64,000 bases of DNA, from positions 6,696,001 to 6,760,000 of the forward strand of contig NC_079169.1 of NCBI RefSeq assembly GCF_947568905.1, read 5' to 3'. The translations under genes were made by a program, and so were the position numbers. Shown here piece by piece: positions 18,342-30,520 of this stretch (position 1 is the first letter of the stretch; the number at the start of each line of letters is the position of its first letter). The stretch comes from Ostrea edulis. Lineage: Eukaryota. Under the pieces are notes generated by a model, which did no database searches, had not been told where the DNA came from, and worked only from the letters and a program-made list of their open reading frames with translations.

Positions 18342-21300
18342 ATGGACGTGTATATTTTTCTTTTCCTAGGATTGTTTTCGAGGTAAGTAATCTATTTTCT
18401 TTTGCCCCACCAAAGATCACAATTTAATTATTCTGATTCGATAAAAGTAAAACGATGCTTCTTAATCTGAAACAACATCAACGAAATGATTAACTCAAAG
18501 TTCTGTATATGACGGGATCCTGAATCATTCTATAACGCAGTACATTTACCATTTATATTTATCATAATGATGAAATTAAAAAATCTCGTTGTCTTTTTTA
18601 AAGAGTATCATGCATCTTGATAATCTAGCATATGTGAGAAGTGCAAAAACACATGTATATCACTTAAGTAAACAGAGAAAACACAGAAAAGCGCAGCAGG
18701 TTTCAATGGCGGGAGTCTGTAGGAGAGTAGTTTGTTCAGAATCTTGTACATCATTAATGAGTCTAGAATCCTCAAACGACAACACAGCAAGATGCTTTCG
18801 TTATCAAGCAAATATTAATTAAGAATTTGTAAGTTTTATTGGACGCGACGGGGCCCCCATGTTTGAAATGTAATACTATCCTTCGATTAAACCTCATCTA
18901 TGTATTCTAATGATCATCTGACCCCAAAAATAAGTATTAATTTAAGCCATCCCCCCTCAGTCTGACCCTAATTTGTTCAAGCTTTTTAAAATTAATGTTC
19001 ATCTGAAGACTGATATTGGAGCCTTTATTTCTATGTTGGAATCTCAACATTTTTGTGAAGATCCATTATCAACTAGGATTATAGATGCGAAATCTGTAAT
19101 AACAAAACCAACCCGTCAGACATAATGTCTTAAAACATCCGTCGATATGGGTGGGGAAAACCCCGGTATTTGGACTGACGGAATAGTAGACCCCCAATAG
19201 CGCGTGCTGAAGAGAGTGGCAGCCGTTTATTAGCACTTCGAATACCTCCGTCTCGTGCCAAAATCATCACCTGATGCGGGGGAGGGTGGCACGGCCATGC
19301 ATCAGCAAATATAACTGCAATGTATATTTATGCTCACTATGTCAATATTAGACAGTTACGTCATTCTATATTTACTGCACAGTGACGGATTCAGATTGAT
19401 GAATCTATGATGTGATTTATTTTTGAATATCTGCAGAAAGAAGTTGATGAAAATCGTACTTCCTTGGTCACGAAAACATATTTATAGTCATGCTACGAAA
19501 TGTGAAAAAACAACAACTAAAAACAAAATAAAACCACACACCCGACACCCGTGCTGTGTTATAAAAATCTTGGATATCAAAATCTTGGATAGCTTTTACA
19601 CCTTTGACATGAGTTTATCTTAAAAAGAATTATAACACATGCAACATTTTCTGGTTGAGACCAGAAACGATTATTTGCCTTCAGTGTCCCTCAAACCTTC
19701 ATCCAGTGGTCAGTTGGTCAGAAACAAATCGTCAGATCAATATCTAGAGAAGTAATATTCATTTTCTAGGGTATCTACCATCTCGTATTATCTTAGACAC
19801 AACCGTCAAGCCTGTGGTCCCCGTCTTCAGATCACGAATAACTCTGAAATACATTTATTACCGATACACGAACTAGTTAGCTTAGCTTAACATTTTTTGA
19901 CATCTAAGGGACAAGTGGCCTTGACAAGAACACTGATGAAAAACCACAGAAACTGTGTATGTAGAGGCACTACATCACATCATGGCCATGTGGCTACGTT
20001 TCCTACATGCATTTCAGATTATCAAGAAATCTGTGATAACTGTAGTATGTATAGATAATTCAAGAAAGTGGATAATAATCTTAATGACACAGAAGACAAA
20101 TAACATTGATCGTTCTGAAATACCGCTAGACAACTAATGTTACTGTATCAGACGATGCCACTGTAAATTTGAGGACATGACCGCCACTGTCATCCGGGCA
20201 CCTGCTATCCAGAAAATTAGGTCTTGTGTACCACGTGATAGGGTCCGCTAATATCTTAATTATGAGACTCTGAAATAAAAGATTTCCAATACAGGACAAG
20301 ATCCGTAGGAGACAATGTTTGACTTGGGGATGACCGGTAATTCCCGGATCGTTTCGTTATCACAGAAGCAAATATTATCCAATTATTGTGAATAACTTTC
20401 TGATTACTCACTATGTATATACACTTCTAAACATGTCGTCGGTCTTGTGATTGCATTTCTCCCCCCTTTAAATGTAAATTCGACTCACTAAGAGTATTGA
20501 CTGATGGGTCAAGCTTACACATTCCGTTAACACTAAATAAACGATTTGTTTTCTTAGAACTACTTACTGGTTTCAAAATACATGTACATGTAGTGTAAAC
20601 TTTTGATGTAGATGAATTTCATTAATCAATAGATTTAAAGTAAGACAGACACATTTAACACTGAATTTTGTGTAACTTTAGATTTAGTAACGCACGAAGT
20701 CAATACTTTTTACGTAGATTTTATTTTATCTATTTTATTATCATTTCAACATGTCCCTCACCACGGACCGAGTCCCTGGATGCCCAATTAAACAGATAGA
20801 ATAATTGAACACTGACATTATATCGCACCATGACTGTGGAGTTTTTGCTCAAATCGACGTTCATTTTATTAGTTCATGACCTGAAGCTGAGATAGTGCTG
20901 TACATCGATACACGTGTAATACAGAGATGCTCACGGACCAGGACGTGCCGGAAAACAAGTCGAAACCTTTAAAAGACAATTTAGACATGAATTTTATCAT
21001 AATTACCGTCTTCCAAGGAAGACGGTATCATATTACAGTCTTCGGACAATGCACTTCCTCTCCTCTGTGATTGGTAGAAAATGTATGATGTGAAAATTTT
21101 AATTTATTTCATTGGTTGAAATTCTGTTCAACGCAAGGGAGATACTGATGATCTCACTTACATACTACTTAACGATTTTATAAGATTTTCAATCTTAAAA
21201 AAGAGAGAGAAAGCGAAGAGAAAAAATAAAAAATAGATTTGCAGCATAATGAAACTGAAATTTTAATCTTATTCATAACAACTATCAAAGATGTTTCTAC

Positions 21301-30000: not shown

Positions 30001-30520
30001 TAAGTCAATCAGGAATCAGAAAATGATTTTTCAAAAATTATTTTCTAACAGGGAGTCGCGACCAGAAATACTAATCGAACCTCGCTTCCTGACAATCGAA
30101 TCCACCGGAAAAGTATATTGGTACCAGCGGGCCAAGCTTCGGACGCCGTGCACCACCGAATCGGAAGGGGAATTCTCATGTTCTGTGACTTTCGGTTCTA
30201 TGCAGTTTCCTCAGAGTGAGCTAGACTTTAAACGTATTATCTGTGATAACCCCGAATCACAACACGGTAAGGTTAACGTCACATCCTGTGTGAAGGAGGA
30301 AGCAATGGATGATTTATCTGGCGTGCCATTTTTGCAAAATACCGTAAAAAGAGGAATGTGTATAGTAAATGTTTCTGTCGACATGGAAGCAAAGAAAAGA
30401 GACCAACTGCAGCACTATAAGGTAGAACCCCGACAGAGCAGCATGACGTCATCGTCTGTTTGTGTTCTTGTAAATTTAGTGACCATAGTTATCCCCCTTA
30501 CATTCGCTCTGGTAATGTAG
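18342..30520 (+). CDS. Cys-loop receptor ligand-binding-domain-only (AChBP-like) protein, 272 aa, probable GPI anchor; join(18342..18382,27573..27780,29616..29716,30052..30520)
   Basis: All introns GT-AG with compatible phases (2,0,2); 819 nt total. Signal peptide MDVYIFLFLGLFSRFTGTDG; Neur_chan_LBD motifs YNKYFRP, V.V....ILDVD, WVDGRLYW, WTPDVYFLN, G.V.W, C-x9-C, FGS; C-terminal hydrophobic tail ending at the stop; no M1-M4 exons found. Confidence 0.88.
23703..25262 (+). mobile_element. Tc1-family transposon in intron 1 of the AChBP-like gene; outermost bases of right TIR replaced
   Basis: Perfect 22-bp inverted repeat ACTCAAAATTTGATAAGGATCA (23705-23726) / 25241-25262; TA at 23701-23702; the right end runs directly into a Penelope-like fragment. 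Confidence 0.9.
23960..25000 (+). CDS. Intact Tc1 DD34E transposase, 346 aa
   Basis: Uninterrupted ORF with HTH, GRQR linker, FTDES, MDDNA-x34-E (SPDLNPIE), WGGI motif. Confidence 0.95.
   Translation: MPPQCVRRRLTTEQLGRCIGMLDAGYSQRDVANALNVSQSIVNKAWNRQQTFGTAAHRHGGGRQRSTTQRQDHFVALQTRRYPFWTVTSLRNDLLNTSGVNVSTQTIRNRLHNAGLNSRRACVRVPLTVRHRRERLDWAEDHVTWTQNDWVQVLFTDESRYCLDFTDRRHRVWRRQRECFHDATISEHDRYGGGSIMVWGGISRDGRTDLHVLERGTMTGERYRDEILDVYVRPYAGAVGPEFILMDDNARPHRVRVVEQYLQQESIVRMDWPARSPDLNPIEQIWNMLQVALSRRRAQPTTLAELGNALVEEWNNLPIGNIRVLIDSMARRCQAVIDARGCHTRY
25262..25581 (+). mobile_element. Penelope-like element 3' fragment / derived repeat
   Basis: SRLKSAFRKFYGRYN C-terminal motif plus the 3' region GGCACCTGATCCCACCTCTGG...GGGGTCCGTGTTTGCCC shared with 62922-63108 (-) and 63700-64000 (+); PLE assignment from recalled similarity. 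Confidence 0.65.
27024..27075. repeat. (CT)n microsatellite
   Basis: Direct. Confidence 0.95.
27077..27340 (+). mobile_element. Meta-domain (MetaSINE/MESC-like) SINE-related repeat; an internally deleted inverted copy at ~27385-27505
   Basis: Central AAACCGAGG...GGCA[A/C]GATAAAGATCCC segment and 3' GGGACGTTAAACAATA tail; shared with the 52325-52939 and 60146-60385 copies. Confidence 0.7.
27778..29250. repeat. Intronic 50-bp satellite whose unit begins with the exon-2 splice donor (CTC|GTGAGTACTACTGAATCCATATAATGCATTGTATATATAAACATTAT), 30 donor copies including the real one
   Basis: Real donor at 27781; copies at 27828 then every 50 bp (one 47-bp unit) to 29225. Confidence 0.97.

Follow-up and report, generated by a model that had tools for sequence, protein, structure and literature searches.

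What does an Ostrea edulis gene encode that is named after an acetylcholine receptor subunit but has no channel exons? The gene lies on the forward strand of the window analysed here, a stretch of 64,000 nucleotides (C6:6696001-6760000; contig NC_079169.1, assembly GCF_947568905.1; positions below are counted from its first letter). Its product consists of the ligand-binding domain (LBD) of a pentameric ligand-gated ion channel (pLGIC), a linker and a hydrophobic tail. We consider it reasonably probable that this is an intact, expressed, single-copy gene for a channel-less pLGIC ectodomain, with a signal peptide and a C-terminal glycosylphosphatidylinositol (GPI)-attachment signal, which would bind a non-cholinergic ligand at the cell surface.

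The four exons (Table 1) had GT-AG borders and their joined translation gave 272 amino acids and a TAG stop codon. This product was 100% identical to the O. edulis RefSeq protein XP_055997404.1 (P0002, 'acetylcholine receptor subunit alpha-like isoform X1'). A preliminary description of the DNA had proposed the same spliced model, with signal peptide, full LBD, linker, QSSMTSSS, hydrophobic end and stop; the identity upholds it, and the four N-glycosylation sequons it had listed (N48, N103, N192 and N223) were all present. The N-terminus encoded by exon 1 was also found in P0002 and in spliced mRNA contigs of relatives (P0036-P0040). The putative signal peptide, in which a site with small residues (..FTGTDG/QQ) comes after a hydrophobic N-terminus, was kept in orthologues. 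In Pfam, the 272-residue protein matched Neur_chan_LBD (PF02931) with 92 bits (cut-off 26) over residues 33-224 and no other domain.

Channel exons were sought in the window and in the whole genome (895 Mb). Among the 150 listed of 162 genome matches to PF02932 (Neur_chan_memb), none fell in the window. In a tblastn search of the window with 41 full-length receptors, consistent matches were obtained only to three LBD exons and to no transmembrane exon. Both results bear out the earlier statement that no M1-M4 exons occur before the next genes, the nearest of which begins about 1 kb downstream. The exon-4 protein matched only itself in the genome, and a paralogue search with a distant family member (P0055) returned only ordinary 400-residue receptors as weak matches. 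The gene thus appears to be present in one copy in O. edulis.

Because the TAG overlaps a GTAATG resembling a splice donor, the tail could be suspected of being M1, with the TAG lying in an intron. Runs X1 and X2, from a relative about 96-97% identical, were provisionally typed as RNA; the exons were covered and the intron between exons 3 and 4 was not. Their contigs carried the joint 29716 to 30052 with GT..AG ends, and the end of exon 2 joined to the start of exon 3 (29616). A 919-nt contig of run X1 was colinear with 30055-30989 and unspliced through the stop, with indels only after it. In a Crassostrea-type relative, mRNA contig L016, placed on genomic contig L004, comprised exons 2, 3 and 4 and 408 nt of 3' untranslated region (UTR), and was also unspliced across the stop. 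Five mRNA contigs from other oysters (L010-L016) contained complete coding sequences of 275-279 residues and 3'UTRs of 0.2-0.9 kb, some of which ended just past a poly(A) signal. All five encoded the same signal peptide, an S-S-M-x-S-S-S motif (kept in six oyster orthologues) and a hydrophobic end, with the stop in the same alignment column. The sequences P0034 and P0005 were on genomic contigs, not RNA. Close relatives transcribe the gene, and their contigs bore out the proposed exon chain at the junctions of exons 2-3 and 3-4 and at the unspliced stop. The opposite outcome considered in the preliminary description, splicing from an internal donor at ~30268 or ~30423 to transmembrane exons, was not seen; such a donor was used only in the predicted protein P0035. 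The unspliced contigs, the conserved stop and the lack of PF02932 similarity rule out that the tail is M1 and the TAG intronic.

P0035 (444 residues) is RefSeq isoform X2, in which LBD residues 1-185 are fused to a downstream open reading frame (ORF) at 32404-33180. A counterpart of 446 residues (P0041), again LBD residues 1-185 plus the downstream ORF, is predicted in Crassostrea angulata. That RefSeq predicts such fusions in two oysters could mean that the fusion is the real product and the short form a by-product, but we regard this as very improbable. The implied junction (after 30256, before 32404) had no GT-AG borders in the window, and the joint was absent from the contigs of runs X1 and X2, in which the two genes formed separate contigs with depths tenfold apart. 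The fusion would also split the beta-sandwich of the domain in half, and the part of exon 4 that lies past the junction is constrained by purifying selection and keeps its stop in all oysters. The fusion partner had no Pfam domain and no hydrophobic segment, so isoform X2 would not be a channel either. We read it as a read-through prediction.

The layout encoded by the short form was not confined to oysters. An exhaustive phmmer search returned 775 relatives. The closest outside oysters were proteins of 260-330 residues with the same layout, so that the architecture proposed from the O. edulis sequence was recovered in bivalves (Pinctada imbricata, Ylistrum balloti, Potamilus streckersoni, Dreissena polymorpha), gastropods (Pomacea, Babylonia, Patella, Bulinus, Arion, Bradybaena) and one cephalopod (Argonauta hians). 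They are automatically named as receptor subunits or hypothetical proteins. In a maximum likelihood tree of 93 LBDs, the LBD-plus-tail rows (n = 32) formed one side of a branch with a Shimodaira-Hasegawa-like approximate likelihood ratio test (SH-aLRT) support of 99, with no channel subunit inside. The few rows of this clade that had no tail were fragments, a fusion or a long branch. Classical CC-loop rows resembling acetylcholine-binding proteins (AChBPs) were placed on the opposite side of the branch, with the channels. Family members shared the helix motif E-E-A-x-Q-I..T-x-F-H-K-Y-N..V-R-P, the motifs W-x-D-x-R-L-x-W and V-W-(T/S)-P-D, and a short Cys-loop without FPFD. They are best read as an undescribed mollusc-wide family. 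Other LBD-only proteins with terminal hydrophobic tails were found outside this clade, namely P0144/P0202 (Lingula), P0078 (the chiton Liolophura), P0072 (Capitella), P0114, P0127 and P0140, and some of them grouped with CC-loop AChBP-like proteins. Lophotrochozoans may have evolved tethered LBDs without a channel on more than one occasion.

The ratio of nonsynonymous to synonymous substitution rates (dN/dS), determined among oysters by the Nei-Gojobori method, was 0.1-0.3 for the whole gene, which is therefore constrained; by this measure, it is under purifying selection. The ratio was 0-0.07 in exons 2-3, 0.15-0.75 in the LBD part of exon 4 (30052-30436) and 0.2-0.55 in the tail. In close Crassostrea-type pairs, the exon-4 LBD part reached 0.66-0.75, against 0-0.06 in exons 2-3. 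Amino acid identity between O. edulis and its oyster relatives was 78-84% in exons 2-3 and approximately 60% in the exon-4 LBD part. Given its higher dN/dS and lower identity, the half of the domain with loops B, F and C evolves much faster. Cys196 was found in O. edulis and in no other oyster, giving the ectodomain an odd number of cysteines. The rates also bear on whether the gene is what remains of a decaying nicotinic receptor gene, with its channel exons lost and its tail left over from M1. The stop codon overlapping a donor-like GTAATG and the richness of the region in transposons and repeats would suit such a remnant. We nevertheless find this explanation scarcely credible, since the tail had no similarity to M1 or PF02932, dN/dS was well below 1, the stop position was conserved in oysters, the same architecture occurred in three mollusc classes and the mRNA was unspliced across GTAATG.

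An AlphaFold2 model built on a 58-sequence alignment had a predicted local distance difference test (pLDDT) score of 86.5 overall and >90 over the beta-sandwich. The N-terminal helix and ten-strand beta-sandwich of the LBD fold were recovered in this predicted structure. Past strand beta10 (214-226), the model comprised a helix (228-240), a low-confidence linker and a terminal helix (258-271). With Foldseek, the best matches in the PDB were to Lymnaea AChBP (template modelling (TM) score 0.82-0.85, root-mean-square deviation 2.3-2.8 Å, approximately 20% identity). By sequence, the best PDB matches were the ectodomains of nicotinic acetylcholine receptor (nAChR) subunits beta3 and alpha2 and of Torpedo beta (E 1e-13 to 1e-11), and nAChR ectodomains and AChBPs scored alike (E 1e-13 to 1e-8). 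By family analogy, the protein would probably form a pentameric ring. Both cysteines of the Cys-loop were invariant in the alignment, with nine residues between them as against 13 in receptors. The FPFD motif, absent from the family's loop, contacts the channel domain in receptors.

The ligand site differed from that of AChBPs throughout the family. The loop A Tyr was replaced by Leu or another residue, the loop B Trp was never Trp (Met in oysters), the loop C Y-x-C-C was absent and the loop D Trp was replaced by Asp. Having no vicinal Cys pair, the protein is not an alpha subunit. The preliminary description had suggested a membrane-tethered AChBP-like protein, with a decoy receptor among the possible roles. 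The channel-less LBD with a GPI-type tail stands, but a decoy for acetylcholine is unlikely, because the aromatic-box residues of loops A, B and C and the vicinal Cys pair are missing in the family. The protein resembles AChBPs in its shape but not in its ligand. The missing aromatic box, together with the half bearing loops B, F and C evolving several times faster than the N-terminal half, points to a non-cholinergic ligand.

How the domain is held at the membrane depends on the tail, which was compared in 29 family members. In its standard form, a GPI attachment signal consists of small residues followed by a terminal hydrophobic stretch. An uncharged hydrophobic run of 11-33 residues was present at the C-terminus in 26 of the 29; the median tail length was about 17 residues, and 12 of the 29 tails had 15 residues or fewer. 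The run ended 0-12 residues from the C-terminus, mostly 0-2, and in O. edulis comprised 20 residues with none after it. A stretch rich in S, G, N and A preceded the run, and small-residue omega-type triplets (S250-S251-S252 and equivalents) were detected in all 29 rows with a heuristic scan that is not a validated predictor. Control M4 termini of channels were preceded by charged motifs and had few such triplets. Across the family, the tail sequence was conserved only in its hydrophobic character. In O. edulis, 30 residues separated strand beta10 from the tail, approximately 46 residues in all following beta10. Tails of 11-15 residues that are terminal and follow small residues are more in keeping with a GPI signal than with a transmembrane helix, and we infer GPI attachment from these features of the sequence. 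The likeliest omega site in O. edulis would be S250, leaving a propeptide of 22 residues.

Two other fates of the tail were weighed. It could stay uncleaved as a single transmembrane helix, in which case the product would be a type I membrane protein with next to nothing on the cytoplasmic side. An uncharged stretch of 19-22 residues in O. edulis and several relatives, the helix drawn by AlphaFold2 at 258-271 and the few charged residues past the tail in members such as P0060 and P0065 agree with this. We consider it unlikely, though deserving of attention: a stretch of 15 residues or fewer, as in 12 of the 29 members, is too short for a bilayer, the tail mostly ends 0-2 residues from the C-terminus, it is poorly conserved beyond hydrophobicity and small-residue triplets always precede it. 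Alternatively, the tail could be a transient signal and the functional form soluble, the domain being shed or secreted like a classical AChBP or the pearl-oyster protein ACCBP. The fold is indeed closest to soluble AChBP, shedding of GPI proteins is common, and Pinctada ACCBP is described as an AChBP relative of the extrapallial fluid (PMC5379566). The classical AChBP-like matches from the same search, however, had no tail and fell outside the clade, and a hydrophobic tail kept in three mollusc classes argues that tethering matters; a soluble functional form is therefore improbable in our view.

If the tail is a GPI signal, it would be cut in the endoplasmic reticulum at a small residue near S250 and a GPI anchor put in place. 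The glycosylated domain would then be displayed on the outside of the plasma membrane, where it would probably form a ring like that of AChBPs. There it would bind a non-cholinergic ligand, either as a tethered binding protein or as a co-receptor dependent on a partner for signalling. Several points weigh against an expressed, GPI-anchored product in O. edulis. The RNA evidence comes from contigs of relatives rather than from O. edulis runs, and runs X1 and X2 are typed as RNA only provisionally. The O. edulis tail of 20 residues is long enough to span a membrane, the omega site comes from a heuristic scan of the sequence, and RefSeq also predicts the fusion isoform X2.

Table 1. Positions of features of the LBD gene and its surroundings in the window
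Feature	Position	Strand	Description
Run of 250 N	15930-16179		Assembly gap or masked
Exon 1	18342..18382	+	Start codon, most of the putative signal peptide (MDVYIFLFLGLFS..), donor AG/GTAAGT; from splice sites and translation
Transposase ORF	23960-25000	+	In intron 1
Exon 2	27573..27780	+	End of the putative signal peptide (to about 27591), N-terminal helix and first strands of the LBD; Pfam LBD positions 5-49
50-bp repeat	27778-29247		Fills intron 2
Exon 3	29616..29716	+	LBD core, W-x-D-x-R-L-x-W ... VWTPD
Exon 4	30052..30520	+	Second half of the LBD, linker, Ser-rich stretch, hydrophobic tail, TAG stop (30518-30520)
Short Cys-loop	30149..30181	+	C150-x9-C160, without FPFD motif
Ser-rich stretch SSMTSSS	30437..30457	+	Residues 246-252; candidate omega site S250 with small residues at +1 and +2 (heuristic scan)
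Hydrophobic C-terminus	30458..30517	+	Residues 253-272, 20 uncharged residues; proposed GPI attachment signal
3'UTR	30521..30989 at least	+	Relative's contig colinear with the genome; AATAAA at 31119
Downstream gene	31509-33586	+	Separate relative's contigs at 31509-32109 and 32268-33586

The introns of the gene contained mobile and repeated DNA. In the 9.2-kb intron 1, a GC-richer patch held an intact Tc1/mariner-type transposase ORF of 346 residues (Pfam: HTH_Tnp_Tc3_2, 66 bits; DDE_3, 50 bits). Intron 2 was filled by 29.5 copies of a 50-bp unit (96% matches). Because the unit starts with the last three bases of exon 2 and the donor (CTC/GTGAGT...), approximately 29 copies of the exon 2 donor follow the real one; it was the authentic first donor that the relative's contigs used. 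The downstream gene encodes an uncharacterised region of 259 residues with three D-(D/E)-V-x-(S/D)-I-V-(D/E)-R-L repeats and no Pfam match. Its adjacency to the LBD gene was conserved in Ostrea and Crassostrea.

A literature search, with many subscription papers outside its scope, turned up no account of an AChBP-like protein that is GPI-anchored or membrane-bound, which is not proof of novelty; a search on the locus identifiers gave nothing relevant. Term searches of a 2019 survey of lophotrochozoan nAChRs and a 2016 pLGIC inventory found mention of neither AChBP nor GPI. More tentatively, the family may be an ancient, conserved, lipid-anchored orphan branch of pLGIC ectodomains in molluscs that has neither channel nor acetylcholine binding, and that serves as a surface receptor or co-receptor for a fast-changing ligand, signalling through a partner. 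If true, the Cys-loop fold would have a so far unstudied function outside channels. The classic examples of nicotinic receptor relatives without a channel, the AChBPs, are known to be soluble; if lipid-anchored, the family would be a second route to a non-channel Cys-loop ectodomain, in this case one attached to the cell surface. Dozens of proteins automatically annotated as 'acetylcholine receptor subunit alpha-like' would also have to be renamed. The protein would offer structural work an easily expressed new scaffold, and it raises the question of what it binds.

Among known systems, the AChBPs of Lymnaea, Aplysia, Bulinus and Biomphalaria share with the oyster protein a signal peptide and a pLGIC LBD without a channel, the same fold and a shortened Cys-loop without FPFD. 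They are soluble and end right after beta10, whereas in the oyster protein a linker and then a hydrophobic tail follow, the latter at the C-terminus. They also have the aromatic box (loop A Tyr, loop B Trp, loop C Y-x-C-C...Y), none of which occurs in the oyster protein, and belong to a separate clade at approximately 20% sequence identity. The nAChR subunits (PF02931 and PF02932) provided the best PDB sequence matches and the RefSeq name, but they have M1-M4, which were found neither in the oyster protein nor in the window or the relatives' transcripts, and their Cys-loop is longer (13 residues between the cysteines instead of 9). Pinctada ACCBP is another LBD-only AChBP relative from a bivalve, and its role is non-cholinergic; it is described as soluble in the extrapallial fluid, with an N-terminal mineral-binding region and no reported anchor, and the comparison here is with this description (PMC5379566). 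The Lynx1/Ly6 prototoxins are GPI-anchored surface proteins of the cholinergic field, as the oyster protein is predicted to be anchored, but they have an unrelated three-finger fold and bind receptors rather than resemble them.

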